From Octopus sinensis (taxonomy: Eukaryota): a stretch of DNA of 51,341 nucleotides. The notes below the pieces were generated by a model, which saw nothing but the letters and a program-made list of their open reading frames with translations, made no database searches and was not told where the DNA came from. Below, piece by piece: positions 3,001-46,074 of this stretch. The DNA is taken from assembly GCF_006345805.1 (NCBI RefSeq), contig NW_021834347.1, positions 1-51,341 of the forward strand, read 5' to 3'. Positions within the stretch are counted from its first letter, which is position 1. The number at the start of each line of letters is the position of its first letter. The translations under genes were made by a program, and so were the position numbers.

Positions 3001-3222
3001 GATGACTTTTCGATCCCAGGCTGGCTCTTCCCTGGGAGATGCGCTTCCAGATTAACCATAGGACAAGCGATTTGGTATACTGATTTACTTTTCCTTTTAG
3101 TTTCCAAAAACATTTTGGTGCTACGATAATGTTATCATTTTTGAGCTTTGATTGGCTCGTGGGGAGACGGCTATCATTGCCGTTACAATTATAATCGTAC
3201 CATTATAGCAGCCGTAGTCGGC
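1..3222 (-). mobile_element. R4/Dong-type (RLE) non-LTR retrotransposon, 3' part runs off the left edge
   Basis: RT motifs NYRPITCL, EQKGCRRGSYGCK, WIDYKKAFDS, GIFQGDSLSP and YMDDLKLY. N-terminal KWTREEY...KLANVRR block is shared with the 27104-31036 element. QWLRSSGLKAE motif lies near position 100. The 5' end abuts degenerate (TAT/CAT)n. Confidence 0.85.
269..3113 (-). pseudogene. Frameshifted RT ORF of the Dong-like element
   Basis: ORFs 1344..3113 and 269..1435 join by a 1-nt frameshift near 1370 (GCK|xQLLINR). A second disruption occurs near 270. Confidence 0.85.
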
Positions 3223-3696: not shown

Positions 3697-4607
3697 GAAG
3701 GGCTGTTCTGTATTGTTTGTGAATAGAGAAGTTGTGTTCCACCAGAGAGAATCTTAGCATCATTATTTTTTTTTCCATGTGCGTTTGTGTTATTGCAATA
3801 AAAAGTGTTTGTATATTTCGTGTAAGGTAATATTGTGGAGGTTGAAGTTGACTTTTCTAGAGTTGTTTGTATGTCCAGTTATAAGAACAGGTGTGTTTTT
3901 GCAATAAAAAGTATATGTTTACATTTATATTTGAATATTCAGGGAGGAAGGAAAGAAAAGTCAGATTTTCATAGAAAGTTTTAGGGTTTTGTAAGTCCAC
4001 AAAAAGAAAAGCGTGATGTTTCTAGAGAGAAGAAAAAAATAAAAGGGTGTTTACAGAGGCAGTTGTGGGTATTAAAGTTTTTAAAGCTGGTCGAATGTAT
4101 GATTGAAAACTGTAGGTATGTAAATTTGTAAATTTCTTAACTTATTTTGAAGGGCTGTTCTGTATTATTTGTGAATAGAGAAGTTGTGTTCGACCAGAGA
4201 GAATCTTAGCATCATTATTTTTTCCATGTGCGTTTGTGTTATTGCAATAAAAAGTGTTTGTATATTTCGTGTAAGGTAATATTGTGGAGGTTGAAGTTGA
4301 CTTTTCTAGAGATGTTTGTATGTCCAGTTAGAAGAACAGGTGTGTTTTTGCAATAAAAGGTATATGTTTACATTTATATTTGAATATTCAGGGAGGAAGC
4401 AAAGAAAAGTCAGATTTTCATAGAAAGTTTTAGGGTTTTGTAAGTCCACAAAAAGAAAAGCGTGATGTTTTTAGAGAGAAGAAAAAAATAAAAGGGTGTT
4501 TACAGAGGCAGTTGTGGGTATTAAAGTTTTTAAAGCTGATCGGATGTATGTTTGAAAGCTGTAGATATGTAAATTTAAATTTGTAAATTTCTTAACTTAT
4601 TTTGAAG
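3697..4607. repeat. Two tandem copies of a ~452-bp unit
   Basis: GAAGGGCTGTTCTGTATT starts at 3697 and 4149, and the copies stay colinear to CTTAACTTATTTTGAAG at about 4607. Confidence 0.9.
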
Positions 4608-4771: not shown

Positions 4772-4824
<53 letters not shown>

Positions 4825-4840
4825 GTTATTATTATTATTA

Positions 4841-4889
<49 letters not shown>
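4769..4889. repeat. (TAT)n microsatellite
   Basis: Direct reading; it explains the poly-N/Y/I/L ORFs. Confidence 0.98.
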
Positions 4890-4891
<2 letters not shown>

Positions 4892-5689: not shown

Positions 5690-6655
5690 TCCCTAACCGA
5701 CCCCTCCCCTCCTTCAAACGCGCCCACAACCTACGTGACCTCTTGGTCCACAGCTTCTTCCCTAACGCAGCCTCCCAACCCGGCTCATTCCCCAGCTCCC
5801 GCCAACGCTGCCATACTTGCCCTCACTTCTCCAACACCACCCTCCTCACAGGCACCCATCACCGACCCTATCATATCGCCGACTCCTTCACCTGCACTTC
5901 TAGCAATGTCATCTACTGCATCTCCTGCTCTTTCTGTCCTTCTCTATATATCGGTCAAACAAGACGCCACTTGGCTGACCGGTTCGCGGAACACCTCCGA
6001 GAAATCTTACTCGGAAATGACACCGCGGTCTCGTGCCATTTCCGTTCTACCGGTCATTCTTTGCAACACCTCTTTGTGTTCGGATTGTCCTTGCACAGGG
6101 GCCATCCGGACTCCCGTCTTCGACTTGAACAGCAATTAATCTTCTCTCTTTGCTCATTGCGCTTCATGGACTCAACTCTCCTCCCCTCTTCATCTAACCC
6201 TCCTCCCCTCTCCTCTCTTCCTCTCACTCTTACTTCTTCGCAACCACCTCTTCTTTCTTGCTCTAACACCTACTTCTCTTCACTTCCACCTCCCTCTCAC
6301 TTCATCGCACCCCTCCCTCGTAACCCCACCCCTACACAATCCAACTTCATCTTCCCTATACAACCCATCCCACTACCACTCCATCCTTTTCACCTCACTA
6401 CCACATACCCCACCCCTATCCCCACACTCAGTCTAACCCACACCCCACTCTTGTCCCCCTCTGTCCGGAATTCGCCATGATAGATTGCTTGCCACCAAAC
6501 ATTCTTTATTTTCTCTCCCTGTTTATTTCTGTGTTCCTTTCTGCCGAAGAGCGTAGGCTCGAAACGTTTAAGATATTCTCACTTCCCGAGCGTTAAACTA
6601 ATACATCTGTTTGTTTTTTACACAACTGTCTTCGTCTTGTTTTTTTTTGTAAATT
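5690..6655 (+). mobile_element. Penelope-like element 3' fragment (GIY-YIG endonuclease plus tail)
   Basis: KRAHNLRDLLVHS, RCHTCPH, NVIYCISCSFCPSLYIGQT..LADRFAEH..EQQLIF. Pyrimidine-rich spacer, then a tail with an HHR-like motif. Confidence 0.85.
6536..6572 (+). ncRNA. Degenerate minimal hammerhead in PLE tail
   Basis: CCTTT-CTGCCGA-A-GAGC(GTAG)GCTC-GAAAC-GTT-TAAG; core deviates from CTGANGA. Confidence 0.45.
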
Positions 6656-6667
6656 TTCACTATATAT

Positions 6668-6708: not shown

Positions 6709-7560
6709 CTAGCATTAAAGATCCGTCGCTGCCGGGTCATAGTGCTAGTGCATGTATATATGTGTATATATATGTGTACATATTACATGTACATCTATAT
6801 ATATACATCTACACATAAAATGCAAAATACAAAGTTATATCTTGATATCGCTAGTGATAACAATACTCAAAATATATAACAGACTGGAATTGTTAGCTCT
6901 TCTTTCTTCTCTACATTGTATACTTTATAGACAATTGTCTTTTCTTTCATTTAATGTTTTTATTATCCATCAGGACTATTCCATTTCAGCACGCTAATTA
7001 TATTTTTAACTTATTCCCATTCAAGTTCAAATCATTAATGCAATTTTATACCAATTACTATTTTTACTTTTGTATGTTACGATTATATTATACTTTAGTT
7101 TGATTTTAATTATTAATTACTACGTATAATTCAATTGTTATTATTATTTTTATTGTTAAAGTGAAAGCATCTGACATAAAATAGAGAAATATTTTTGTTT
7201 CACTTTTAACTCGTAATACTGAAATAGTGGAGAAGATATGATATTGCTATGGGCTCGCTCTAGGCAAGAGTTGAACGTTTTGTTTGGACCCATGAAACTA
7301 CATGGACAGTAAGTAAGGCATGTGTAAAATTTGAATGAAATTGGTTATGTAGTTCTCAAGTTTTAGGGAATCGTAGTAGAGAAGATATGATATTGCTGTG
7401 GGCTCGCCCTAGGAAAAAAGTTAGATGACACTCCCCGGGCCCTAAGTAAGGCATGTGTAAAATTTGAATGAAATTGCTCGTGTAGTTCTTAAGTTTTAGG
7501 GAAACACACAGACAGACACACAGACAGACACACATTCTCAGTTTTATATATATATAAAGA
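6709..7560 (-). mobile_element. Non-autonomous Helitron
   Basis: On minus, starts TC-TTTATATATATAAAACTG at 7560 and ends with a GC hairpin (CCGGCAGCGACGG) then CTAG|T at 6709. TA-rich flanks and an internal ~115-bp duplication. Confidence 0.6.
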
Positions 7561-7874
7561 TATATATATATATATATATATATCAGTAACAATAAAGGGT
7601 GAAATTAATTAATTTGGAATAATTATCAATTACACCAAGTAGATTTCGGCATGTAAAAGCCTCATTCGAGGAAAATTTAAGTAATACTAAGCAATTAAGG
7701 GTTTAGCAACGAATTGCCTCACCAACACACCGAATTTAGAAATAGCAGTCAAAGAGATATAGCTATTCCTTCTACTAAAAGGGAGATCTCAGTAAAAACA
7801 CAGTACTTGAAAGGCAAACACAGACAGGTAAGAAAGAATGAAATGACGGCAATCTATCATACAATTTTAAGTTA

Positions 7875-7966
7875 CCTACGGACGTACGTTTCGAAATCAA
7901 GTTTTAGGAAAGCATTAGAATTAGAAAATTCTACCTTACCCAAACTTCTTTTCTCATCGGCGTAGG
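7875..7966 (-). ncRNA. Type I hammerhead (core CCGATGA variant)
   Basis: CCTACG-CCGATGA-GAAAAGAAGTTT...AAACTTGATTTC-GAAAC-GTAC-GTC-CGTAGG; perfect 6-bp stem I. Confidence 0.75.
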
Positions 7967-8320
7967 ATACTACAATTATGAATAATTGTATATTAAATTT
8001 TGAGATACTAGAAGGCATTATCTCAACTCAGTGTCAGAGCGAGCCAAAGCATGACCAGTACCACGAAATTCAAAGTGTGAATGAAAGTTTGTGTCACCAG
8101 TCCCCCTCCACCCGCGTGTAGCCAAGACAAGATGCTGTGGTCATTTACTGGGATAAAATATGGTTATCAGTAACAATAAAGGGTGAAATTAATTAATTTG
8201 GAATAATTATCAATTACACTTCGTGGTACTGGTCATGCTTTGGCTCGCTCTGACACTGAGTTGAGATAATGCCTTCTAGTATCTCAAAATTTAATATACA
8301 ATTATTCATAATTGTAGTAT

Positions 8321-8412
8321 CCTACGCCAATGAGTAAAGAAGTTTGGGTAAGGTAGAATTTTCTAATTCTTATGCTTTCCTAAAACTTGATTTCGAAACG
8401 TACGTCCGTAGG
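8321..8412 (+). ncRNA. Type I hammerhead, core mutated (CCAATGA)
   Basis: Inverted copy of 7875-7966 with a change at the conserved core G; predicted inactive. Confidence 0.6.
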
Positions 8413-8600
8413 TAACTTAAAATTGTATGATAGATTGCCGTCATTTCATTCTTTCTTACCTGTCTGTGCTTGCCTTTCAAGTGCTGTGTTTTTACTGAGA
8501 TCTCCCTTTTAGTAGAAGGAATAGCTATATCTCTTTGACTGCTATTTCTAAATTCGGTGTGTTGGTGAGGCAATTCGTTGCTAAACCCTTAATTGCTTAG

Positions 8601-8652
<52 letters not shown>

Positions 8653-8662
8653 GTACATATAT

Positions 8663-8830
8663 ATATACACACATTCGCCATGACTGATCGCTAGCCAATA
8701 AATCTTTATGATTTTATTTTCTCTCTCTGCTTATTTCTGTGTTCCTTTCTGTTGTGCAGCGTAGGCTGGAAACGTAAAAGACTTTCTCACCTCCCGAGTG
8801 CATATCTTTTGCTTAAAAACACATTTGCTT
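8663..8830 (+). mobile_element. PLE tail fragment (same family as 6470-6655) with HHR-like motif at 8744-8780
   Basis: TTCGCCATGA...TTATTTCTGTGTTCCTTTCTG shared with 6473-6545. CCTTT-CTGTTGTG-CAGC(GTAG)GCTG-GAAAC-GTA-AAAG. Confidence 0.65.
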
Positions 8831-9084: not shown

Positions 9085-9960
9085 TTACATATCCGAGCTT
9101 TGACCTGGTTCGCTCAAGTTTTCTTTTTTGTGTTACAGAGTAAACACGGCCGCTCCATTGGCAGTGTGTGTCAAGGAAGACCAGAGATCAGTGATCCGAT
9201 TTCTCTGGTTTCAAAGTGTGCCCGGAGCTGTAATTTATCGCTGGTGCTCTGTACGATACGGGAATGGCGTTCTACCATATAGAAGTGTGTATGAGTGGAT
9301 CGAGAAGTTTGAATATACCATAGAAGCACGAAGTTGGAGCAGGGTGTTGATCAACCTCCAGGACGGATGTGAGGATTCAAGAAACTCAAGTTTGGTTCTG
9401 ATGAACCGACGCGTGACCGACAATCAGGTGGTATGTTCTCTGCAAATTAGACGTGGTTCTGCATACGAAATAATCCACCACTATCTTTCCTTCTGTAAAG
9501 TTTGTGCAAGATGGATGCATAGGTGCAATCGTATGGAGATCTGCCAACGCTTATTCAACCGCTATAACGACGAAGACGAAGCTTTTATGAAGAGAATAAT
9601 CACAAGAAATGAAACCTCGGTCTGTCACTTTAAACCAGTATCCAGGAGGCATAATATGGAGCGAAAATGAAATTTAGGATTCAACCTTCTGCAAAATAAC
9701 AGATGCTGACCGGTTCTTGGGACGCAAGAATACTTGTATTGGGACATTACTTGGAAAAGAAAGATGTACAGTCACCTGTGTAGGCGACAGAGAAATGCTA
9801 CCCAGTAATGTGAGACCGAAACCATCTATTTGCAACAAATACCGAGGTCTATGAACACCGTCGAATCCATTGAAACATTGGGCTTCGAGTTACTGCAACA
9901 CACTGCATACAGTCCAGATCACGCCCCTTCCAACATTAATTCTTTGGACCACTCAAACAT
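9085..9960 (+). mobile_element. Decayed mariner transposase relic
   Basis: EDQRSVIRFLW, YRSVYEWIEKF, KVCARWM, RIITRNET (degenerate TGDET), HTAYSPDHAPS (degenerate YSPDLAP). Frameshifts present and no TIRs recognised. Confidence 0.85.
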
Positions 9961-10814: not shown

Positions 10815-12588
10815 TCGACCAAAGATTGGTCAAGTTTTGTTCAAGTAGTGAGTTCTTGTTGGGTGAGTTGTATCCAATTATGGGTGGCTTATCTGGTATT
10901 CTTTGAAGGAATCTATCCAGACTGTTTGAAGTTGATGGGATCCTTTTCCTCTTTGATCTCCCTCGGGACAATGTTAAATAGGGCAGGGCCTGTTGAGGAA
11001 AAGAAATTATGTTGCAGTGTACATGTATGTTGTGATCTTGAATTAGGCAGGGGTCGTATGGCCCGTGGTCCCAGTCTTGGATGAACCTTGAAGCTAATGT
11101 TAAGGTCGTTTGGGCAAAGTCGGCGGTATATTCTCCACATCGTACAAATGATGTACCGCTCACGGCGACACTGGAGGGAGTAAAGTTTCAAGGCTTTAAG
11201 GCGATCCCAATAATCGAGAGCAGCCATGCCTTCAATTCGTTCCGTGAGTGCCCTCTGGGGTGACTCAATTCTGGAGATGTTTTGTCTTGTATGGGGAGAC
11301 CACAGTGGGCAGCAGTATTCAAGGTGTGGCCGTACAAAGGAGGAAAAAAGTGGTATGATGACACCTTGTTCTCTGGACCGGAAGGTTCTTAAGATCCAGG
11401 AACTCATCCTACGACCTATATCGACCTTCTTGTTGATGTGTGCACTCCAACTGAGATCGTCATCAACAATTACACCCAGGTCTCTGATATTGTTAGAGGC
11501 TGTGAGCGGTTCCCCTGAAGGAAGAGGGTATGGTTGTTTTAGTGAGGAATTTCTTCTAAAATGCATCAGCTCAAATTTTCCCTCATTCAGTTGCATTTTA
11601 TTTCTGTCTGCCCATTGACTCACAGCATATAGATCAGACTGGAGTTGAGTTCGGTCTGGTTCTTCATTGACGATTTGCTGGAGCTTAGTGTCATCAGCAA
11701 ATATTTTCACTTTGCAGTAATGTACAGCACTGGAAAGGTCGTTTATGTAAATTATGAAGAGTAGCGGACCCAAAACAGTCCCCTGGGGAACACCGCTGGT
11801 AACTTTTGCTGGGCTTGAGTGGACTCCATCAACTACAACAATGTGATGTAAGAGCTGTGTTAGACAGTCCCTGCCACAGCGAAAGCCATGCTGATTTGCA
11901 TTTAGGAGTTTGTGGGTTTCCAGGAAGTCAGCTATCCTTGATCTTAACACTCTTTCAAACACTTTAATGATGTGGGAGGTGAGTGAGATTGGGCGATAGT
12001 TGACTGCGAGGGATCTGTTTCCCTGTTTGAAAACCGGGATGACCGACTGGGATAGAAACTGTTTCGGTATATAACCTGCGTCTAACGAATTTCTCCAGAG
12101 GTTGGTCAGAGGGACTGCAAGCAGGTGTCTACATTCCTTCAGGAGACTAGCGGGGAATCTATCAGGGCCTACAGCGGAGTAATATTTGACCTCATTTATT
12201 GCTGCTACGATGTCAGTGGCAGTGAAGGTTATGTCTGTGATTTTGTGTTGGGAGTCAACTTCGTTCGTTTCTCTTACGTCAATATCAGTGGGAACACTAA
12301 AGACAGAGCAGTATTGTTTCTGCAATATATCTGCCATTTCTTTAGCATCGTGTTGGGGAATGCCGTTGTCATCAATCAATTGCCCAATGGGTGAGACAGT
12401 GGCTCTATGCTTATTTGCATAAGAATAGAACACTTTTGGGTTCTGTTTGATGTTTTTGATTACCCACTGTTCCTCCACAGCTCTTTGATTTTCAATGGAG
12501 GTTTTCATGTTGGTCTGCAGATGAAGTTTTTCCAGCTCTAGTCTTTTCATTGTTGTTGAATGTGGATGTTGTGTGGGGGAATATTTTA
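10815..12588 (-). mobile_element. 5'-truncated CR1-type LINE with internal in-frame deletion
   Basis: AVGPD, NYRPISLTS, QHGFR, SGVPQGTVLGPLLF, FADDTKL, VRPHLEYC. No APE domain; motif A (DFxKAFD) is absent. Confidence 0.9.
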
Positions 12589-12792
12589 ATATATATATAT
12601 ATATACTAAGCAATAAGGGTTTAGCAACGAGTTGCCTTACCACATACCGAATTTAGAAATAGCAGTCAAAGGGTTATAGCTATTTCTTCTACTAAAAAGG
12701 GAGATCTCAGTAAAAACAGCATTTGGAAGGCAGACACAAACAGGTAAGAGAGAATGAATTGACTGCAATCTATCATACATTTTTTTTTTAGT

Positions 12793-12904
12793 TATCCACG
12801 GACGTACGTTTCGAAATCAAGTTTTTAGGAAAGCATAAGAATTAAATATTAAATATTAAATAATTCTATCTTACCGAAACTTCTTTTCTCTTCAGCGTAG
12901 AATA
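12793..12904 (-). ncRNA. Type I hammerhead ribozyme, canonical core
   Basis: TATTCTACG-CTGAAGA-[long stem II]-GAAAC-GTAC-GTC-CGTGGATA. Confidence 0.85.
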
Positions 12905-13392
12905 CTATAATCATAAATGATTATATATTGAATTTTGAGATACCAGAAGGCACCAACTCAACTCAGTATCAGAGCGAGCTAGAATCCGCAACTGGTATCA
13001 CCGAATTCAATTTGTGAATGAAACGATTGTGTCAACAGCCCCTTCCCACCCGCGTGTAGCCAAAACAAGATGCTGTGGTCATCTACTGAGATAAAATATG
13101 GTTATCCGTAATAATGAAGGGTGAAATTAATTAATTTGGAAAAATTATCAATTACACCAAGTAGTCTTCGGCATGTAAAAGCCTCATTCGAGGAAAATTT
13201 AAGTAATACTAAGCAATAAGGGTTTAGCAACGAGTTGCCTTACCACATACCGAATTTAGAAATAGCAGTCAAAGGGTTATAGCTATTTCTTCTACTAAAA
13301 AGGGAGATCTCAGTAAAAACAGCATTTGGAAGGCAGACACAAACAGGTAAGAGAGAATGAATTGACTGCAATCTATCATACATTTTTTTAGT

Positions 13393-13504
13393 TATCCACG
13401 GACGTACGTTTCGAAATCAAGTTTTTAGGAAAGCATAAGAATTAAATATTAAATATTAAATAATTCTATCTTACCGAAACTTCTTTTCTCTTCAGCGTAG
13501 AATA
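13393..13504 (-). ncRNA. Type I hammerhead ribozyme, canonical core (tandem copy)
   Basis: Same motif as 12793-12904, 600 nt downstream. Confidence 0.85.
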
Positions 13505-14099
13505 CTATAATCATAAATGATTATATATTGAATTTTGAGATACCAGAAGGCACCAACTCAACTCAGTATCAGAGCGAGCTAGAATCCGCAACTGGTATCA
13601 CCGAATTCAATTTGTGAATGAAACGATTGTGTCAACAGCCCCTTCCCACTCTCTTACCTGTTTGTGTCTGCCTTCCAAATGCTGTTTTTACTGAGATCTC
13701 CCTTTTTAGTAGAAGAAATAGCTATAACCCTTTGACTGCTATTTCTAAATTCGGTATGTGGTAAGGCAACTCGTTGCTAAACCCTTATTGCTTAGTATTA
13801 CTTAAATTTTCCTCGAATGAGGCTTTTACATGCCGAAGACTACTTGGTGTAATTGATAATTTTTCCAAATTAATTAATTTCACCCTTCATTATTACGGAT
13901 AACCATATTTTATCTCAGTAGATGACCACAGCATCTTGTTTTGGCTACACGCGGGTGGGAAGGGGCTGTTGACACAATCGTTTCATTCACAAATGAATTC
14001 GGTGATACCAGTTGCGGATTCTAGCTCGCTCTGATACTGAGTTGAGTTGGTGTTCTTCTGGTATCTCAAAATTCAATATATAATCATTTATGATTATAG

Positions 14100-14215
14100 T
14101 ATTCTACGCTGAAGAGAAAAGAAGTTTCGGTAAGAAGATAGAATTATTTAATATTTAATATTTAATTCTTATGCTTTCCTAAAAAACTTGATTTCGAAAC
14201 GTACGTCCGTGGATA
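14100..14215 (+). ncRNA. Type I hammerhead ribozyme, canonical core (inverted copy)
   Basis: CTGAAGA 14109-14115, GAAAC 14196-14200, GTC 14205-14207; predicted cleavage after 14207. Confidence 0.85.
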
Positions 14216-14497
14216 ACTAAAAAATGTATGATAGATTGCAGTCAATTCATTCTCTCTTACCTGTTTGTGTCTGCCTTCCAAATGCTGTTTTTACTGAGAT
14301 CTCCCTTTTTAGTAGAAGAAATAGCTATAACCCTTTGACTGCTATTTCTAAATTCGGTATGTGGTAAGGCAACTCGTTGCTAAACCCTTATTGCTTAGTA
14401 TTACTTAAATTTTCCTCGAATGAGGCTTTTACATGCCGAAGACTACTTGGTGTAATTGATAATTTTTCCAAATTAATTAATTTCACCCTTCATTATT

Positions 14498-14538
<41 letters not shown>

Positions 14539-17735: not shown

Positions 17736-18234
17736 AACAATGCACACATATTTGCTGCGTATACTTTTCATCCTCCAGCCCAACTCGATAAAGATATAAT
17801 CGTACCTGTGACTGAATATAGAGAACACGTTTTACAGTGGAGTGTAGGTATTTGACATCTACTTCTAGCATAGGCGCTGGTCATGTCCAGCAGCCCTTAT
17901 TTATAACTATATCTTTATAATCATATATGTAAATAAGTAATGTTACCTATACGGTAATTTTTATGTGTTAGGACACTGATGTAATAATATATATATATAT
18001 ATATTATATATATATATATATATTATGTGAAATAGAAAGATGAATAATCTTGTAGTAGATTAATCAAAAGTTTAACCGATACCTTAGTAGCAAAAATCAC
18101 AGCAGTGAACAGCACGGTTGGAGGTACAACCATCTGGCGTTGCAACCGTGCGTTGGTGCGGATAATTGAAATTAAAACATTATTGGTGAATTGAAGAAAT
18201 GGAGCTGAACGCAGATTGAACAGAAATCGTTTTA

Positions 18235-18323
18235 TTTCATTCTACACGTGTTTCGAAAGGCACAAATTACCAAAATCCGATTGAATAATGGGACCATATT
18301 GTGTCTTTCTCTTCAGGAAGAAA
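18235..18323 (-). ncRNA. Type I hammerhead in inverted PLE terminus
   Basis: Reverse complement of 20864-20952. Confidence 0.8.
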
Positions 18324-18372
18324 AAAGGAAATCCGTTGGAAAAACAAAAACAGAACAGAGGCAGAGCAAAAA

Positions 18373-20252
18373 TAGTGTGCTAAATAAGGCCCTCTGGCAT
18401 GCTCACAACAAGGCAGGCCTCACCAGAGAAGAGATAGATATCATTTTAGTTGCCAGGAAATCGTTTATTAAGTTTGATAATAAGCTGTGGATCCGTAAGG
18501 ATACTCCCAATGAATTTGATGTGCCTATGGGTAGTTCGGATAGTGCGCAGATAGCCGATTTGGTCGGAATATATATTCTCTACGAATTGTCCGATCAATT
18601 CCCGGAAATCGCGGGCGGCCTGTATCGTGACGATTGTCTGTTTTACCTGCAAAACACCACGAACAGAATAGTGCAGAAAACTAAGAGCAGGTTAGCTAGG
18701 TTTTTTAATAGAATGGGCATGAGTATAGTTTTTGATAACGAACTCACCAAGGCTAATTTCCTAGACGTTACACTTAACCTAATAGCGACTCATACTGCCC
18801 TTACCATAAGCCTTCCACTAATTTGAAGTATGTCAGTGTCTTCTCAAATCATGCCAAAACCGTAACAGACAATTTGGTTAAAAACATCTCTCTAAGATTG
18901 TCTGGCCTGTCCGCCAGTGCCGATATTTTTATGCAGAAAGCGGATTTTTATAACGCCGCACTATCCAAGGCCGGTTATAGGCAGAAGGTAATTTATATTG
19001 ATCCGGCCCTTCCGATGCCATCATTCGGTCATCAGGATAGGGCCGTATATAATAACATTAACATTTTAAGTAAGGACGGGAGCGCGGCGGATACCGGGGT
19101 AGTCGCTCCCGCATTTAATTTAGCGAACAAGGATAATTATCGGTCCGGGAGGTCTTACACTAACCCAAGACCCGTTATTCATCCGAGAATCACCCACCCA
19201 AATGCGAGAGCTGGCGTCCCGACCCATCACACTGATAGGAATAAGCATATATGGTTTGTAATCCCCTTTGGTAAGCAGATTAGAACTAACCTCCCCCTCA
19301 TGTTTAGACAAGCCATCGCCAATAACTTCCCCAGAAATTCCAAATATTACTCCACGGTTAACTCACATAAAGTTAGGATAGCTTTCTCCAACACTAAAAA
19401 CCTCGCCCAGATAATCGCCTCCCATAATAATAGGCTACTTACTAAGACCCTATCACCTTTTTCCGGAGGCACAGCCTCTTCCGCTCCCGGTTTAATGCTC
19501 AGTAGGAATAATTATAGTAGTAATAATGATATGAGAGCCAGTACAGTGACACATAATCTCAGCTCCAGCCAGGGAGTACCCACTAGGGGTATAGTTATAA
19601 ATAGGGGTGTTGTGGTTGATGGTAACAATGGGAGTAGGGTAGAGAGCCCCTTTAGCATCCCCAGCATCATTTCCCGCAATAGCAGTACCACGGGCAGTAG
19701 CAATGACAGCACTCTGATAGATAGTGGAGAATCAGGGGTTATTCCTATAGTTAATAGTGACGTAGTGGAAAATAGAGTAGTAAGCGGCTGCAGGTCTCGG
19801 AACGAATATAGTGACAGGAACGCAGTTCTAATTTCAGAAACCAATCCTAGCAGAGTAAGATTCACGTCGGCGAACTCCAAGATCAAAAACGCCGTCTACC
19901 AATGCAAGGTTTACACGGACTCAGATGCCTTCACTTATATAGGGGCATCATCCTCAAGATTGTCTTTGCGTGTCTCCAACCATTACGCAACTTTTCGGGA
20001 CGTGAACAAGCGCCAGACCACGGGACTCAGTAAGCTAATATGGCGACTGAAGGATGCGAACTTAAGCTATAGGCTGGAATGGTCAATTTTGTCGGTGGCC
20101 CTCCCATTTGATAGGGGCAGAAGACAGTGCAACCTTGTGTCTCCGAACTCTTCCATATTTTGTTTGCCAGAGGCCGGATGGTAAACGGGCTCTTACAGTC
20201 GGCTTTTCGATGCCCCCATTGGCGGCGTTACACTTATCTGGCCTTTAAATAG
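18373..20252 (+). pseudogene. 5'-truncated upstream copy of the PLE ORF
   Basis: Near-identical to 22017-23898, with 1-nt deletions in T runs near 18787 and 20135. Confidence 0.9.
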
Positions 20253-20863
20253 CGTTTATAAATAAGACCGGCACCCATAGCCCTTGGTAGCAAATTCTGA
20301 AATAGATTTTAAGATATCTACAATTAACCACTGCAAGGGAAATTACTCCTGTAAGACAAACGGGGCTTGTTTTTTCACAGCGGGGGGTTTCCTTGTCAAG
20401 GTAGGCTTAGATGAACACACACACACACACATAAAACATAAAATATATATATATAATTTCTTTATTTTTTTTCTTTCTGCCACCCAACGGTTATCACGGC
20501 AGTAGCCACTGACAGCCGAACGATCAAACGCACACACGTACACAAAAAATGTTTTCTACCCCTACGCCAACACACACATATATAGAACAGTATACACACA
20601 CACACGTCTCTAAGTAGATTTTTTCTCGCCCCTTATAAAACATCCAATATTCTTTAAATAGTCAGAACTTTATTCTCGGTCACAAAGAACATCTATACAC
20701 CCTCACCCACATGTTTGACCGATGCCTGACCTGTTGAATTCTTCAGCCACCGGTTCTCAACATACACTGATAAACAGTTTCGCCATGGGCTCTTAGGAGC
20801 ACAGTTCGATTTGTTTTTTGCTCTGCCTCCGTTCTGTTTTTGTTTTTCCAACGGATTTCCTTT

Positions 20864-20952
20864 TTTCTTCCTGAAGAGAAAGACACAATATGGTCCCATT
20901 ATTCAATCGGATTTTGGTAATTTGTGCCTTTCGAAACACGTGTAGAATGAAA
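20864..20952 (+). ncRNA. Type I hammerhead ribozyme in PLE pseudo-LTR
   Basis: TTTCTTC-CTGAAGA-GAAAGACAC...GTGCCTTTC-GAAAC-ACGT-GTA-GAATGAAA; predicted cleavage after 20944. Confidence 0.82.
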
Positions 20953-21210
20953 TAAAACGATTTCTGTTCAATCTGCGTTCAGCTCCATTTCTTCAATTCA
21001 CCAATAATGTTTTAATTTCAATTATCCGCACCAACGCACGGTTGCAACGCCAGATGGTTGTACCTCCAACCGTGCTGTTCACTGCTGTGATTTTTGCTAC
21101 TAAGGTATCGGTTAAACTTTTGATTAATCTACTACAAGATTATTCATCTTTCTATTTCACATAATACATACCGCTTCGTCAAGAAACTGCTACTTTAACC
21201 GACGCCAATA

Positions 21211-23898
21211 ATGGAGTTGTTCGAGATTGATGCGTCCCTTAAGGATATTCCTATACCACCAAAGGATGCCTTCCTTAAGGAGTTGGTTTGTAAAACCAAC
21301 GCATTCATAAACCGGATAAGATGGCTCATTTTCTTCCACGAGAACGAAGATCTAAAATCGAACCGGACAACTGCATCGTCCGAATACGGCCGGCTTTTTA
21401 AAACATTGGATACGCCGCCACCGAACCCAAGACTGAAGAAGTTTGAGGACGACTTGTGGGACATAGTTAGAAAGATTAAGTTCAGGAAGTCACCCAGGAG
21501 AAATGCCCACCTCAGATACCTAGATAAAATTACCAAGGACATTAATAGAACGGACGGAGTCCTGGTCCAGTCCGACAAGACCAGGAACACATACAAGATG
21601 CCCATTAAGCAGTACCTAGATTTACTCGGTAAAGAGATCAAGAAAAATTATAGAAAAACCAATTGGAGTACCCTGAGGAAGGTAAACTTGGAAATTAAGG
21701 ATATAATATTTAAACACCGAATTCAAATGAGAACTCAGCCGCTTAGCCCCAAGCAACCCAGATTTATAGTGAAGGACCATAAACCTAACTTCCACACCAA
21801 CCCAGCGCTAAGACTCATATGCCCTGCTAGATCTGATATCGGGATAATCAGTAAGTACATTTTAGATAAATATATCCCTAGTTTAGTAAACAAGCTGAAG
21901 CTCAGCCTCTGGGCCAACTCCTCGCAGGTAGTGAAGTGGTTCTCTTCCATCCCCAATAAGAACCGTACTAGGTTCATTCAGTTTGATATCGCCAGCTTCT
22001 ACCCCTCGATTAACCCTAGTGTGCTAAATAAGGCCCTCTGGCATGCTCACAACAAGGCAGGCCTCACCAGAGAAGAGATAGATATCATTTTAGTTGCCAG
22101 GAAATCGTTTATTAAGTTTGATAATAAGCTGTGGATCCGTAAGGATACTCCCAATGAATTTGATGTGCCTATGGGTAGTTCGGATAGTGCGCAGATAGCC
22201 GATTTGGTCGGAATATATATTCTCTACGAATTGTCCGATCAATTCCCGGAAATCGCGGGCGGCCTGTATCGTGACGATTGTCTGTTTTACCTGCAAAACA
22301 CCACGAACAGAATAGTGCAGAAAACTAAGAGCAGGTTAGCTAGGTTTTTTAATAGAATGGGCATGAGTATAGTTTTTGATAACGAACTCACCAAGGCTAA
22401 TTTCCTAGACGTTACACTTAACCTTAATAGCGACTCATACTGCCCTTACCATAAGCCTTCCACTAATTTGAAGTATGTCAGTGTCTTCTCAAATCATGCC
22501 AAAACCGTAACAGACAATTTGGTTAAAAACATCTCTCTAAGATTGTCTGGCCTGTCCGCCAGTGCCGATATTTTTATGCAGAAAGCGGATTTTTATAACG
22601 CCGCACTATCCAAGGCCGGTTATAGGCAGAAGGTAATTTATATTGATCCGGCCCTTCCGATGCCATCATTCGGTCATCAGGATAGGGCCGTATATAATAA
22701 CATTAACATTTTAAGTAAGGACGGGAGCGCGGCGGATACCGGGGTAGTCGCTCCCGCATTTAATTTAGCGAACAAGGATAATTATCGGTCCGGGAGGTCT
22801 TACACTAACCCAAGACCCGTTATTCATCCGAGAATCACCCACCCAAATGCGAGAGCTGGCGTCCCGACCCATCACACTGATAGGAATAAGCATATATGGT
22901 TTGTAATCCCCTTTGGTAAGCAGATTAGAACTAACCTCCCCCTCATGTTTAGACAAGCCATCGCCAATAACTTCCCCAGAAATTCCAAATATTACTCCAC
23001 GGTTAACTCACATAAAGTTAGGATAGCTTTCTCCAACACTAAAAACCTCGCCCAGATAATCGCCTCCCATAATAATAGGCTACTTACTAAGACCCTATCA
23101 CCTTTTTCCGGAGGCACAGCCTCTTCCGCTCCCGGTTTAATGCTCAGTAGGAATAATTATAGTAGTAATAATGATATGAGAGCCAGTACAGTGACACATA
23201 ATCTCAGCTCCAGCCAGGGAGTACCCACTAGGGGTATAGTTATAAATAGGGGTGTTGTGGTTGATGGTAACAATGGGAGTAGGGTAGAGAGCCCCTTTAG
23301 CATCCCCAGCATCATTTCCCGCAATAGCAGTACCACGGGCAGTAGCAATGACAGCACTCTGATAGATAGTGGAGAATCAGGGGTTATTCCTATAGTTAAT
23401 AGTGACGTAGTGGAAAATAGAGTAGTAAGCGGCTGCAGGTCTCGGAACGAATATAGTGACAGGAACGCAGTTCTAATTTCAGAAACCAATCCTAGCAGAG
23501 TAAGATTCACGTCGGCGAACTCCAAGATCAAAAACGCCGTCTACCAATGCAAGGTTTACACGGACTCAGATGCCTTCACTTATATAGGGGCATCATCCTC
23601 AAGATTGTCTTTGCGTGTCTCCAACCATTACGCAACTTTTCGGGACGTGAACAAGCGCCAGACCACGGGACTCAGTAAGCTAATATGGCGACTGAAGGAT
23701 GCGAACTTAAGCTATAGGCTGGAATGGTCAATTTTGTCGGTGGCCCTCCCATTTGATAGGGGCAGAAGACAGTGCAACCTTTGTGTCTCCGAACTCTTCC
23801 ATATTTTGTTTGCCAGAGGCCGGATGGTAAACGGGCTCTTACAGTCGGCTTTTCGATGCCCCCATTGGCGGCGTTACACTTATCTGGCCTTTAAATAG
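21211..23898 (+). CDS. PLE polyprotein: reverse transcriptase plus C-terminal GIY-YIG endonuclease (895 aa, uninterrupted)
   Basis: DKT motif, QFDIASFYPS (motif A), VPMGS, LYRDD (motif C), FLDVTL; AVYQC...YIGAS...RVSNH...CNLCVSE...CPH. Confidence 0.92.
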   Translation: MELFEIDASLKDIPIPPKDAFLKELVCKTNAFINRIRWLIFFHENEDLKSNRTTASSEYGRLFKTLDTPPPNPRLKKFEDDLWDIVRKIKFRKSPRRNAHLRYLDKITKDINRTDGVLVQSDKTRNTYKMPIKQYLDLLGKEIKKNYRKTNWSTLRKVNLEIKDIIFKHRIQMRTQPLSPKQPRFIVKDHKPNFHTNPALRLICPARSDIGIISKYILDKYIPSLVNKLKLSLWANSSQVVKWFSSIPNKNRTRFIQFDIASFYPSINPSVLNKALWHAHNKAGLTREEIDIILVARKSFIKFDNKLWIRKDTPNEFDVPMGSSDSAQIADLVGIYILYELSDQFPEIAGGLYRDDCLFYLQNTTNRIVQKTKSRLARFFNRMGMSIVFDNELTKANFLDVTLNLNSDSYCPYHKPSTNLKYVSVFSNHAKTVTDNLVKNISLRLSGLSASADIFMQKADFYNAALSKAGYRQKVIYIDPALPMPSFGHQDRAVYNNINILSKDGSAADTGVVAPAFNLANKDNYRSGRSYTNPRPVIHPRITHPNARAGVPTHHTDRNKHIWFVIPFGKQIRTNLPLMFRQAIANNFPRNSKYYSTVNSHKVRIAFSNTKNLAQIIASHNNRLLTKTLSPFSGGTASSAPGLMLSRNNYSSNNDMRASTVTHNLSSSQGVPTRGIVINRGVVVDGNNGSRVESPFSIPSIISRNSSTTGSSNDSTLIDSGESGVIPIVNSDVVENRVVSGCRSRNEYSDRNAVLISETNPSRVRFTSANSKIKNAVYQCKVYTDSDAFTYIGASSSRLSLRVSNHYATFRDVNKRQTTGLSKLIWRLKDANLSYRLEWSILSVALPFDRGRRQCNLCVSELFHILFARGRMVNGLLQSAFRCPHWRRYTYLAFK

Positions 23899-24509
23899 CG
23901 TTTATAAATAAGACCGGCACCCATAGCCCTTGGTAGCAAATTCTGAAATAGATTTTAAGATATCTACAATTAACCACTGCAAGGGAAATTACTCCTGTAA
24001 GACAAACGGGGCTTGTTTTTTCACAGCGGGGGGTTTCCTTGTCAAGGTAGGCTTAGATGAACACACACACACACACACATAAAACATAAAATATATATAT
24101 AATTTCTTTATTTTTTTTTTCTTTCCCACCCAACGGTTATCACGGCAGTAGCCACTGACAGCCGAACGATCAAACGCACACACGTACACAAAAAATGTTT
24201 TCTACCCCTACGCCAACACACACATATATAGAACAGTATACACACACACACGTCTCTAAGTAGATTTTTTCTCGCCCCTTATAAAACATCCAATATTCTT
24301 TAAATAGTCAGAACTTTATTCTCGGTCACAAAGAACATCTATACACCCTCACCCACATGTTTGACCGATGCCTGACCTGTTGAATTCTTCAGCCACCGGT
24401 TCTCAACATACACTGATAAACAGTTTCGCCATGGGCTCTTAGGAGCACAGTTCGATTTGTTTTTTGCTCTGCCTCTGTTCTGTTTTTGTTTTTCCAACGG
24501 ATTTCCTTT

Positions 24510-24598
24510 TTTCTTCCTGAAGAGAAAGACACAATATGGTCCCATTATTCAATCGGATTTTGGTAATTTGTGCCTTTCGAAACACGTGTAGAATGAAA
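24510..24598 (+). ncRNA. Type I hammerhead ribozyme (second unit)
   Basis: Same motif as 20864-20952 at +3646; predicted cleavage after 24590. Confidence 0.82.
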
Positions 24599-24651
24599 TA
24601 AAACGATTTCTGTTCAATCTGCGTTCAGCTCCATTTCTTCAATTCACCAAT

Positions 24652-24658
<7 letters not shown>

Positions 24659-24728
<70 letters not shown>
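24659..24728. repeat. (TA)n microsatellite, right flank of the PLE
   Basis: Direct reading. Confidence 0.97.
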
Positions 24729-24731
<3 letters not shown>

Positions 24732-30100: not shown

Positions 30101-31036
30101 TTTATAATTGGTGTTGTTATTTCGTTTATTTTTATTCTTGGGAGGTATGGTCGGTGGTCCATTTTGGGCTCTGTGGTTTTCAGTTCTTTGATTATTTTAT
30201 TTTTTATATTATCATAATCATTAGGCTCCCCTTCGTTGTTTACATCGTGTTTGTTGGGAATGTTGCGTTTGTCTTCGTGTTTTACAGTTTCAGTGTTTAT
30301 ATTATTGGGCATTGTTGTGTGGCTTCTATCTACATTTTCCTGGTGTATTTTTTCTTTTAAATGTTCTATTTCTATTTCTGATATTTTTTTGGCTTTGAGA
30401 ATGTATCTTCGTACGTTAGCTAATTTATTAGGGTTCATTGCTGTATCCAAGTCTATATCTCTATTATTTTCCTTCCATATTTTATATGTATGTGTGTTGT
30501 ATTTTCATTTTTTGGGTAGAGCATTGCTGTGAATATGCGTGTAAGATAGAAATGTATTCCTCACGTGTCCATTTACGTCTTTTGGGTTTTATTTGCGGGA
30601 CATGAGGTACAACGTCCGGCCCATTATTTTGACGGTTGTCATTTTCGTAGGGTACCGGTCCGTTTATTTCTGTTGTCACATTATTTCGCACGTGTAGTTT
30701 TTCGTACATTTTTTGTTGTAAGTTTAATGTACGTACCGCTCGATTGTTATTCTTGGGTTGAATAGTATCGGTGGCATTTAATTTCTTCGTAGTTCTTTGT
30801 ACATGGTGTTTGAGGTCGGGGATGATCGTGATGTTCCACGCATGTTTACATGTGTTGTGTTAGAGGTGGAGATAATATCGAGTCAAAATACATCATTTCG
30901 TTTCGAAAATAGTAATAAATTTCAATTAGTATTACTTACTCGGATACAGTCCAATTCTTTGTTAGTAAATCTTTGGCTCCATAGGATGTCCTTGTTTTCG
31001 ATGTTTGTGGATAGATTTCGGAGCTCTGTATTTTCC
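27104..31036 (-). mobile_element. Near full-length R4/Dong-type RLE non-LTR retrotransposon (multiply frameshifted)
   Basis: RT (WIDYKKAFDS, YMDDLKLY), CRICG..ETINHIISSC zinc knuckle, RHD, RPDIV...LIDVSIP..EK..KY.DL RLE domain; (TAT)n at 27079-27103 and 31037-31092. Confidence 0.92.
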
Positions 31037-45445: not shown

Positions 45446-45603
45446 CGAAAAGTGGAGGGAACTGAGCAACGAGAGAAGGCAAAGAAATGTGAGAGAGGGG
45501 GAACGTCCGAACGAAGAGTGGAATGAACAAATAAGCGTGAAAGGGCTGAAAGACAGAAATAGAGTCGTGCAACATTTAGAAAACTGTATACTTACGTACG
45601 GCG

Positions 45604-45637
<34 letters not shown>

Positions 45638-46016: not shown

Positions 46017-46074
<58 letters not shown>

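Follow-up and report, generated by a model that had tools for sequence, protein, structure and literature searches.

Within the window analysed here, a 51,341-nucleotide stretch of Octopus sinensis contig NW_021834347.1 (assembly GCF_006345805.1), positions 12606-14504 are occupied by 1.74 direct and 1.42 inverted copies of a 603 bp repeat unit (12606-13208; GC content 0.347), with (TA)n tracts flanking both sides. This agrees with the approximately 1.7 direct plus 1.4 inverted units of about 600 bp reported in a preliminary description of the same DNA, as does the lack of a credible reading frame, the unit being non-coding with no ORF longer than 48 amino acids inside the repeat. The left arm of this insertion (locus 1) starts at a (TA)n target microsatellite (12590-12605, unstranded) and consists of an outer full unit (unit positions u1-603; 12606-13208) followed by an inner 5'-truncated one (u1-444; 13209-13649), both on the minus strand, which is the ribozyme sense strand here; their sole difference is a homopolymer run 3 nt shorter in the inner copy. 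The RNA-sense 3' end of the outer unit adjoins the (TA)n at what we call terminus A (ending in CCCUUAUUGCUUAG and followed by UAUUA). The right arm, with its sense on the plus strand, begins with an inner 5'-truncated piece (reverse complement of u147-1; 13650-13795), continues with a full unit (reverse complement of u603-1; 13796-14398) that is 98.2% identical to the left-arm units, and ends in a 106-nt 'tail' found on this arm only (reverse complement of u603-498; 14399-14504), which leads from terminus A to terminus B (ending in UUCACCCUUCAUUAUUACGGA and followed by UA) at the right-hand (TA)n microsatellite (14503-14536, unstranded). The arms meet head-to-head, the orientation switching at 13649/13650 with a microhomology of at most 1 nt. 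Tandem copies within an arm are identical save for homopolymer length, and the arms differ from each other by 1.3-1.8%. Tracts of (TA)n with at least six repeats number 28 in the window and cover less than 2% of it.

Each unit carries one type-I hammerhead ribozyme motif with the elements previously listed for it (CTGAAGA, a long stem II, GAAAC, a palindromic stem III and GUC), its strand being minus in the left arm and plus in the right. Copies 1 (12795-12901) and 2 (13395-13501), on the minus strand, have a 76-nt helix II and predicted cuts after the C at 12801 and the C at 13401, respectively; copy 3 (14103-14213, plus strand) reads UCUACG CUGAAGA, an 80-nt helix II, GAAAC GUAC GUC and, past the predicted cut after C14207, CGUGGA. 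Common to all three are stem I (UCUACG/CGUGGA), CUGAAGA, an imperfect helix II of 76-80 nt, GAAAC, GUAC and a GUC cut before C, and their helix III is the palindromic ACGUACGU. The predicted cleavage site lies at u195/196, away from the ends of the element, and the DNA reads through it.

A bare hammerhead motif is weak evidence on its own, because a plain descriptor is expected to give 0.17 to 0.40 matches per dinucleotide-shuffled window. A descriptor requiring an 8-nt palindromic helix III, composed post hoc with the sequence already known, gave no match in 1000 shuffles versus six in the real window, these belonging to two unrelated elements. Folding, one of the checks suggested in the preliminary description, recovered the hammerhead three-way junction, both as the minimum free energy structure and with RNAalifold, with a stem I of 6+4 bp and a long stem II. 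The covariance-model check that it also suggested succeeded in part: Rfam scans of the whole window at the gathering score and of 2.3 kb at E ≤ 10 returned no hammerhead match, and on a 156-nt stretch Hammerhead_1 (RF00163) was the top family among 4227 (17.3 bits, E = 0.09), with an alignment that spans the full-length model and places a 76-nt insert in helix II, at a score below the gathering score of 34 bits. The great length of helix II may account for this low score and makes the usual contact between loops 1 and 2 unlikely. RNAalifold further shows one compensatory pair in stem I, from U-A to C-G, the covariation coming from two lineages only, and the hammerhead region folds no better than its shuffles (z = -0.30). 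With RNAcofold we obtained a predicted homodimer with an 8-bp intermolecular helix III (-54.6 versus 2 x -21.1 kcal/mol), and it is only in this predicted dimer that helix III forms, which agrees with the dimeric type-I hammerheads known for metazoan repeats and Penelope-like elements, or PLEs (PMC4209133). These models support the assignment of the hammerhead to the type-I, dimer-dependent kind.

The preliminary description knew of a single locus, but a second insertion of the family, 84% identical to the first, is present at 7584-8603 (locus 2). Its left arm (7584-8219, minus strand; u498-603 and then u1-552, about 1.09 units) has terminus B against (TA)n, its inverted and 5'-truncated right arm (8220-8603, plus strand; about 0.63 unit) has terminus A against (TA)n, and the two meet head-to-head at 8219/8220. 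Termini A and B are therefore common to both loci, in mirrored arrangement, with different centre junctions and with flanks that are unrelated apart from (TA)n, which indicates a mobile family with defined 3' ends. Since these features go together with a period of 603 bp at one locus and 584 bp at the other, the short unit must predate both insertions. Each locus carries the 106-nt extension on one arm only, and it is this tail, with about 150 nt around the termini, that is best conserved between them (92-100% identity versus 84% overall). The 3' 205 nt of the unit also fold better than shuffles (z = -3.43), and such a conserved, well-folding 3' region is consistent with a module recognised by a reverse transcriptase (RT). 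Hammerhead remnants occur in both arms of locus 2, at 7875-7966 on the minus strand (core CCGAUGA) and at 8321-8412 on the plus strand (core CCAAUGA); a U4-to-C change in the catalytic core is common to the two, and a 14-nt deletion is restricted to the tip of helix II. The core change suggests that the ribozyme is either dispensable or under no selection. The family is known from these two loci, both within one 51-kb window.

About 4 kb from locus 1 lies a coding element, PLE-1, with the same layout, namely (TA)n, inverted arm with tail, 1.72 tandem units and (TA)n. Its inverted 5'-truncated arm (18034-18372, minus strand; reverse complement of 20815-21165) forms the end with a 152-nt tail, set against (TA)n at 17988-18023, and its direct arm (18373-24658, plus strand) consists of a partial tandem (1.72 units, unit length 3645 bp) amounting to pseudo-LTRs, and ends against (TA)n at 24659-24729. 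It contains an intact ORF of 895 amino acids (21211-23898) with RT and GIY-YIG-like parts, and hammerheads at 18237-18322 in the inverted arm and at 20865-20950 and 24511-24596 in the direct arm. The pseudo-LTR hammerhead consists of CUGAAGA, a 55-nt helix II closed by GAAAG/CUUUC, GAAAC and the palindromic ACACGUGU, and has Hammerhead_1 as its best Rfam family (14.8 bits). The order hammerhead, terminus A, terminus B is common to the unit and PLE-1, and the invariant core positions are unbroken in all three young copies of locus 1 and all three of the active-looking PLE-1. Judged by the motifs given in PMC8557442, where the Hydra clade is defined by DKT, an endonuclease without CCHH, a CxCX5C linker, CxxC and CxH around conserved E and N residues, (TA)n targets and a hammerhead, PLE-1 appears to be a Hydra-clade-like autonomous PLE: it has DKT, CNLC..E and CPH, no CCHH, a (TA)n target and a hammerhead, and the CxCX5C linker is found in its homologues and is degenerate in the PLE-1 copy itself. 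The ORF gave no match in Pfam or PDB, either as a single sequence or as a profile, and is not on record by exact-sequence look-up in public assemblies. The contigs that bear homologues of PLE-1 (Argonauta hians, Logan, ENA) contained no hammerhead by descriptor and no similarity to the unit. PLE fragments are common in the window, and two of its transposon proteins have their best named relatives in Argonauta hians (34-46% identity).

We consider it very probable that locus 1 is one retrotransposition product of a non-coding, non-autonomous PLE derivative of about 600 nt, of the 'non-LTR retrozyme' class. The element thus adds one more case to a kind already described and does not found a class of its own. 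PLE insertions in their textbook form sit in (TA)n and combine a partial tandem, a neighbouring 5'-truncated copy in inverted orientation and a one-ended tail (PMC8557442), and locus 1 matches this form in its partial tandem, inverted arm, (TA)n and one-sided extension; the same marks recur at locus 2, and (TA)n tracts adjoin all four termini of the two loci, or six of six when PLE-1 is counted. Ribozyme antisense falls on the plus strand for the left arm and on the minus strand for the right one, as one would predict if both 3'-OH ends left by cutting the target were extended. A purified PLE protein is known to cut and extend both strands and to initiate cDNA synthesis at two neighbouring sites inside the RNA, which define the tail (PMC11167929), and non-LTR retrozymes were previously tied to PLE pseudo-LTRs (bioRxiv 10.64898/2026.07.22.740005; PMC7229834). 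The unit has no ORF with a telomerase-like RT and GIY-YIG and is thus not an autonomous PLE itself. Several observations weigh against the overall reading: the low Rfam score, the unremarkable fold of the hammerhead region, the covariation from two lineages only, the core change at locus 2 and the small number of loci, all given above, as well as the following. Local alignment of the unit with the UTRs of PLE-1 and PLE-2 in the window scored no better than shuffles, and non-autonomous elements usually share the 3' ends of their partner; we expect the genome to hold such a related autonomous partner outside the window. The 106-nt tail is also longer than the 30-40 bp of the literature (that of PLE-1 measures 152 nt).

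The preliminary description had placed the element with retrozyme-type elements, which is right for a unit that measures about 600 bp, codes for no protein and bears a type-I hammerhead, and had further proposed that monomer size, long stem II and inverted architecture suggest a distinct family. None of these characters proved distinctive: 603 bp falls within the 51-972 bp of published non-LTR retrozyme consensus lengths (bioRxiv 10.64898/2026.07.22.740005), published circRNAs measuring between 150 nt and upwards of 1000 nt (PMC7229834); the inverted architecture is a standard signature of PLE insertion, seen also in the ORF-bearing PLE-1; and the hammerhead of PLE-1 has a long stem II of its own. 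That the unit might be only the pLTR of a coding element, as it had also envisaged, does not describe what we found, namely a 603 bp period without an ORF and without similarity to either PLE in the window.

Metazoan non-LTR retrozymes resemble the unit in being non-coding AT-rich tandem units with one type-I hammerhead each and apparently without LTR, PBS or PPT (PMC7229834; bioRxiv 10.64898/2026.07.22.740005), as well as in a short helix III with a palindromic loop cap, favouring dimeric cleavage, and in a proposed dependence on PLEs. They form long arrays, whereas locus 1 has 1.4-1.7 units per arm, one of its arms is plainly inverted, and it shows a tail and sits in (TA)n as its target; their helix II has about 4 bp plus a loop, compared with 76-80 nt here; and circRNA has been published for them and is a possibility for our element. 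PLE insertions, especially those of the Hydra clade, have the same pseudo-LTR partial tandem, adjacent inverted 5'-truncated copy, one-end tail and (TA)n, and also carry a type-I hammerhead, placed upstream of the points where the RT starts; in Schistosoma pairs of hammerheads on opposite strands, 100-700 bp apart, have already been noted (PMC8557442; PMC11167929; PMC4209133); the 603 bp unit without an RT/GIY-YIG ORF differs from the about 3-4 kb of these elements. The non-autonomous Chlamys PLE derivatives, such as MRC1 of Chlamydomonas (PMC8557442), are likewise short and non-coding, with pseudo-LTRs, head-to-tail multicopy arrangement and a PLE enzyme in trans, but they are green-algal, lack canonical hammerheads, target (CA)n or (C)n (PMC8557442) and have 3' ends in common with known autonomous families, a comparison that for our unit covers the PLEs of the window only. 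Newt satellite 2 and Schistosoma SM-alpha share a type-I hammerhead in a non-coding repeat, a weak helix III and a double hammerhead in multimers, and differ in that their units measure about 330 bp and come as long arrays or as SINE-like copies, and further in a short canonical helix II and in tertiary loop contacts; the published descriptions found for them contain no PLE-style inverted arm. Plant LTR retrozymes (PMC4918200) are also non-autonomous and non-coding, with a hammerhead-bounded RNA of 600-1000 nt able to circularise, but theirs are type-III hammerheads in true LTRs, with PBS, PPT, 4-bp target duplications and mobilisation by Gypsy elements (PMC4918200). Our element appears to lack all of these and does not belong with them, its hammerhead being of type I and its repeats partial tandems instead of LTRs.

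No relatives of the 603 bp unit beyond loci 1 and 2 were found in the collections searched. A spurious 47-amino-acid ORF of the unit is not on record by exact-sequence look-up in public assemblies, and searching metagenomes for the conserved 21-mer GATTTCGAAACGTACGTCCGT turned up nothing. A generic long-helix-II descriptor did produce 28 metagenome matches, nearly all of them a single conserved bacterial gene start from soil without stem I, and these we regard as spurious.

Integration probably takes the form of target-primed reverse transcription that begins at both ends of the cut target and copies an uncleaved multimeric or circular RNA. Transcription of a tandem source copy would yield a multimeric RNA, in which the hammerhead helix III would be too short to fold alone; the palindromic ACGUACGU would pair two ribozymes into a double hammerhead, able to cut after GUC and to release monomers that are possibly ligated into circles. 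We infer that a PLE reverse transcriptase/GIY-YIG endonuclease acts in trans, that both strands serve in priming and that the ribozyme is active. This enzyme would cut both strands of a (TA)n microsatellite, and each free 3'-OH would prime cDNA at terminus A or B, two initiation points inside the structured 3' part of the RNA; because these lie 106 nt apart, one arm would be tailed and the other not. Both cDNAs would then pass at least one uncut or religated hammerhead site and extend beyond unit length. Joining of the two cDNA ends would follow, head-to-head and over 0-1 nt of microhomology, along with fill-in of the second strands. Starting from the observed sites on a linear, hammerhead-processed monomer, cDNA could reach at most about 301 nt, and the four arms measure about 1047, 856, 640 and 383 nt, so that such a monomer was not the template. 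The earlier argument that read-through for more than one unit points to a circular or multimeric template therefore stands for uncleaved multimeric or circular RNA, though not for the circle as a requirement, because the 3.6-kb coding PLE shows read-through of more than one unit as well. A multimeric linear RNA is in our view the somewhat more probable template, and a circular one has a little less than an even chance. Ribozyme cleavage is probably not needed for integration.

In a further explanation, the element is a self-standing retrozyme that propagates strictly through a circular RNA of about 600 nt by excision, ligation and rolling-circle reverse transcription, the inverted half being a later rearrangement. 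The cDNA of more than one unit running through intact cleavage sites, the identity of tandem copies within an arm save for homopolymer slippage, and the circRNAs of type-I hammerhead repeats documented in corals, mussels and axolotl (PMC7229834) would all fit such a circle. However, a 3.6-kb ORF-bearing PLE with the same tandem of more than one unit and inverted arm makes a small circle unnecessary, and the recurrence of the inverted arm with both termini at locus 2 argues for an insertion mechanism and not a later accident. The template of locus 2 was moreover apparently core-dead in both arms (U4 to C) and hence not self-excisable, and PLE insertion in vitro uses unprocessed RNA (PMC11167929), so that we regard propagation by circles alone as unlikely.

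We likewise doubt that the hammerhead-like motif is catalytically inert, whether as a relic or as a structural element, an explanation that is compatible with a PLE origin. Both locus 2 cores are mutated and their copies evidently transposed, the long helix II removes the contact that loops 1 and 2 usually make, the Rfam score is under the gathering score, PLE hammerheads cut poorly in vitro (PMC4209133) and the PAc ribozyme requires protein (PMC11167929). Against inertness stand the whole invariant core in three young copies of locus 1 and three of PLE-1, the compensated base pair of stem I, and the retention of a palindromic helix III by two unrelated elements.

It seems very unlikely that the loci are dead remnants of an autonomous PLE whose ORF was deleted after insertion and whose 603 bp period arose when its pseudo-LTRs recombined unequally. 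Truncation and rearrangement are common among PLE copies (PMC8557442), PLE fragments are frequent in this window and only two loci are at hand, but these are independent, with the 603/584 bp period and the termini in common and with different junctions and flanks, and no residual likeness to the PLE ORFs or UTRs of the window is left in the unit. Mobilisation by a LINE or another reverse transcriptase instead of a PLE is highly improbable. A LINE non-LTR RT ORF (10913-12550; Pfam RVT_1, E = 3.8e-18) does lie directly left of the (TA)n of locus 1, and LINEs are left as possible mobilisers in PMC7229834; the element nevertheless has no poly(A) or LINE-like 3' tail, no such LINE lies alongside locus 2, and the inverted arm, tail and (TA)n target are PLE hallmarks, reproduced by PLE-1. 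Finally, replication errors or fold-back assembly errors can yield inverted and tandem near-identical copies, and (TA)n tracts are fragile and common (the 28 mentioned above), but a satellite, a palindromic duplication at the DNA level or an assembly artefact is scarcely credible where six of six termini of three structures adjoin a (TA)n that covers under 2% of the window, where precise termini are common to loci just 84% identical, where the arms are 1.3-1.8% apart, unlike those of a fold-back artefact, and where a coding PLE has the identical layout. A Helitron or foldback DNA transposon was also considered and set aside, the outer ends both being 3' ends of the same sense, at two unit positions, with a variable centre; so was a tRNA-derived SINE, ARAGORN having found no tRNA.

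The case for a link between animal retrozymes and PLEs has so far been built mainly on their co-occurrence and on the resemblance in sequence of retrozymes to pseudo-LTRs. A retrozyme-type unit with the full signature of PLE insertion, a few kilobases from a coding PLE of the same layout and with a ribozyme of the same unusual style, gives this link direct structural support. It also provides a concrete system in which to study what the hammerhead is for, since a core-dead copy apparently transposed, and by what route the one-sided tail and the pair of RT start sites come about. Hammerheads with a very long helix II are missed at Rfam thresholds, and inverted partial tandems such as locus 1 are easily mis-annotated as satellites or palindromes. 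More tentatively, and with somewhat less than even confidence, we suggest that the two loci belong to an undescribed lineage of hammerhead-bearing, non-autonomous PLE parasites, whose copies record priming on both strands, two fixed RT starts and an integration independent of ribozyme catalysis, the last because a core-dead template transposed, and whose hammerheads form a subclass with a helix II of 55-80 nt. If this is true, the genomic copies would be a natural record of a mechanism seen only in vitro, with one lizard PLE, and the 55-80-nt helix II subclass would be common to Hydra-clade PLEs and their parasites and missed by current covariance models.

The stretch at 12606-14504 (locus 1) consists entirely of one 603-bp unit, whose copy at 12606-13208 has a GC content of 0.347. 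Unit positions (u) follow the plus strand, the ribozyme sense running opposite. Along the plus strand, u1-603 is followed by u1-444 and then by a flip in orientation at 13649/13650, where microhomology is no more than 1 nt and beyond which come the reverse complements of u147-1, u603-1 and u603-498. (TA)n tracts adjoin the left (12590-12605) and right (14503-14536) ends, and the repeat holds no ORF longer than 48 aa. Because this layout, the (TA)n ends and the absence of ORFs match it, the preliminary description of this locus was accurate. Directly at the left (TA)n lies the 5' end of a LINE (non-LTR) reverse transcriptase ORF, 10913-12550 on the minus strand, whose RT domain is interrupted by a gap.

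Three complete type-I hammerhead motifs occur at 14103-14213 (+), 13395-13501 (-) and 12795-12901 (-), all with UCUACG, CUGAAGA, a 76-80-nt imperfect hairpin, GAAAC, GUAC and GUC/CGUGGA (the slash marks the predicted cleavage site). Folding, one of the checks proposed earlier, recovered an MFE structure in which stems I and II enclose an unpaired core, and RNAalifold on five family copies gave the same three-way junction, but the MFE energy was no better than that of shuffles (z = -0.30). Among these copies one stem I pair changes in a compensatory manner from U-A to C-G, and another from G-U to A-U. The covariance check with Rfam reported no hammerhead at the gathering score (34 for Hammerhead_1) and nothing at E<=10 over 2.3 kb; only on a 156-nt stretch did Hammerhead_1 rank first among 4227 families, at a sub-threshold 17.3 bits (E = 0.09), the alignment spanning the whole model, with 76 nt inserted in helix II. 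It is this very long helix II, which sets the unit apart from published non-LTR retrozymes but is shared with the coding Penelope-like element (PLE) PLE-1 (18034-24658), that leaves the motif below the Rfam threshold.

A plain hammerhead descriptor is expected to match 0.17-0.40 times per shuffled window, while one that also requires an 8-nt palindrome across helix III, composed post hoc once the data were seen, gave no match in 1000 shuffles against six real matches. Core-only descriptors yield false positives, as shown by metagenome matches (loci L005-L031) to CTGANGAGAAA N45-75 TTTCGAAACNNNNGT, which we rejected as a conserved bacterial gene start found in many soil metagenomes. In the RNAcofold prediction, ACGUACGU joins two hammerhead copies by an 8-bp intermolecular helix III (dimer -54.6 versus 2 x -21.1 kcal/mol), which is the double-hammerhead arrangement known from metazoan type-I and PLE ribozymes (PMC4209133).

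A second insertion of the family at 7584-8603 (locus 2) is 84% identical to locus 1 and likewise (TA)n-bounded and head-to-head. Its centre junction (8219/8220) differs, its arms (about 1.09 and 0.63 units) are unlike those of locus 1 in length, the flanks of the two loci are unrelated, and its hammerhead has a 14-nt deletion limited to the tip of helix II. The outer ends occupy the two unit positions seen in locus 1, mirrored: in each locus one arm stops at terminus A (..CCCUUAUUGCUUAG/UA) and the other at terminus B (..UUCACCCUUCAUUAUUACGGA/UA), 106 nt downstream of A in the ribozyme sense. Since the predicted cleavage site (u195/196) lies 195 nt upstream of terminus A, it does not coincide with an element end. 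The stretch between the termini (the tail) and the termini surroundings are best conserved between the loci (92-100%), and the 3' 205 nt of the unit are more structured than shuffles (z = -3.43), which fits a 3' recognition module. Just left of locus 2, 7225-7503 holds two direct duplications, one of 43 nt (91% identity, 149 bp spacing) and one of 79 nt (86%, 133 bp).

PLE-1 has the same architecture and bears an ORF. Between (TA)n tracts at 17988-18023 and 24659-24729 lie an inverted 5'-truncated arm (18034-18372) and a direct arm of 1.72 tandem units of 3645 bp (18373-24658); the direct arm terminates at ..CACCAAUAAUGUUU/UA and the inverted arm, 152 nt longer, at ..CUAUUUCACAUAAUA/UA. The intact 895-aa ORF (21211-23898), about 200 aa of which form a Ser/Asn-rich insertion, had no match in Pfam or PDB; its homologues number more than a hundred and reach 43% identity. 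Measured against the published feature set of the Hydra clade (PMC8557442), the ORF and its homologues have an RW motif and DKT instead of DKG, lack the CCHH cysteines in their C-terminal GIY-YIG-like block, and finish with CxxC..E and CxH; the CxCX5C linker is present in homologues and degenerate in this copy, and (TA)n targets and a hammerhead complete the likeness. With tandem copies 99-100% identical, PLE-1 is apparently a young autonomous Penelope-like element. Its pseudo-LTR hammerhead comprises UUCUUC CUGAAGA, a 55-nt helix II closed by GAAAG/CUUUC, GAAAC, the palindromic ACACGUGU and GUA as its predicted cleavage site; Hammerhead_1 came first by E-value (14.8 bits, E = 0.48), another family exceeding it in bits. 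The order hammerhead, terminus A, terminus B is common to PLE-1 and the 603-bp unit.

A fragment of a second PLE (5743-6660) contains an ORF end with a weak, below-cutoff GIY-YIG match (Pfam E = 0.0076) and, after it, a 3' region that includes the hammerhead-like string CCGAAGAGCGUAGGCUCGAAAC and ends at a TA/CA microsatellite; its core, coinciding with that of locus 2, has CCGA where CUGA is expected. A 125-bp copy (85% identity) of this 3' region, at 8675-8800, stands immediately beyond the (TA)n on the right of locus 2. Further transposon fragments lie at 269-3113 (-), 27467-30450 (-), 44444-45575 (-), 9128-9670 (+) and 49257-49992 (-), among them LINE RT pieces (Pfam RVT_1), a remnant of mariner type with a weak, below-cutoff Pfam match to HTH_48, and what looks by eye like the remains of a Tc1-like transposase. 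For two transposon proteins the closest named relatives come from the octopod Argonauta hians, at 34-46% identity (46% for the LINE RT at 10913-12550); no host gene was recognised among the ORFs examined in the window. A 449-bp unit repeated 2.0 times (3697-4607, 95% matches), with (TTA)n at 4772-4890, contains no core found by the hammerhead descriptor. The (TA)n tracts at 45605-45634 and 46018-46071, about 413 bp apart, have identical flanks (..CUUACGUACGGCGC before, AUACAAAAUGGGACAAGAACGCAAA after) and are a repeat containing or targeting (TA)n.

PLE insertions are known as partial tandems (pseudo-LTRs) with hammerheads, often with an adjoining inverted 5'-truncated copy and a short tail at one end only, and several clades target (TA)n (PMC8557442); hammerhead pairs on opposite strands, 100-700 bp apart, were noted earlier in Schistosoma (PMC4209133). 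Purified PLE protein nicks and extends on both DNA strands, its reverse transcription beginning at two neighbouring sites within the RNA, the distance between which is the tail; its insertion is unimpaired in hammerhead mutants (PMC11167929). In locus 1 the plus strand of the left arm and the minus strand of the right arm are antisense to the ribozyme RNA, a geometry consistent with both 3'-OH ends of a cut (TA)n having been extended. From this geometry and the published pattern we take locus 1 to be a single insertion, probably made by a PLE enzyme acting in trans, of a non-autonomous PLE derivative that corresponds to the non-LTR retrozymes of animals. We found no autonomous partner: similarity of the unit to the UTRs of PLE-1 and of the 5743-6660 fragment was not significant, and neither exact-protein look-up, metagenome scans nor contigs carrying PLE-1 homologues yielded relatives.

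The 603-bp element belongs to an already known kind. Non-LTR retrozymes with type-I hammerheads are known from cnidarians, molluscs and amphibians (PMC7229834), and a 2026 preprint (bioRxiv 10.64898/2026.07.22.740005), in which their consensus sequences measure 51-972 bp, argues for interpreting them as non-autonomous PLE sequences. Neither the monomer size, inside that range, nor the inverted architecture, familiar from PLE insertions, therefore distinguishes the element, contrary to the earlier suggestion of a distinct family. A limited literature search found no description of such elements in cephalopods, which is not proof of novelty. What does differ, besides helix II, is the tail, 106-152 nt in the unit and PLE-1 against a published 30-40 bp, and the clarity of the end pattern: in all three insertions (12606-14504, 7584-8603 and 18034-24658) one end is tailed (B) and the other stops at A. 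The pattern may point to an obligatory asymmetry of the two priming events, although three out of three may also arise by chance (random choice would give p = 0.125).

As to the RNA template, reverse transcription from the observed start sites would yield no more than 195 or 301 nt on a linear hammerhead-processed monomer, and all four arms of loci 1 and 2 exceed this, crossing at least one intact predicted cleavage site. The arms being too long for it, the template is either an uncleaved multimeric RNA or a religated circle, and the preliminary view that read-through means a circular or multimeric template is thus borne out. Tandem copies within an arm are identical except in homopolymer length, and the arms diverge by 1.8% in locus 1 and 1.3% in locus 2, which agrees with separate templates, one per arm, and fits circle and multimer alike. 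Both locus 2 arms carry a U4-to-C core change (CCGAUGA), one with a further G5-to-A, so that, judging from its sequence, the template of locus 2 is likely to have lacked catalytic activity; alternatively, the shared change may reflect gene conversion between the arms. Read-through of more than one unit occurs also in PLE-1 (3.6 kb, coding). On the strength of this read-through and the core mutation in both arms, we lean modestly towards a multimeric linear RNA rather than a circle as template, and infer that hammerhead cleavage is unnecessary for integration.
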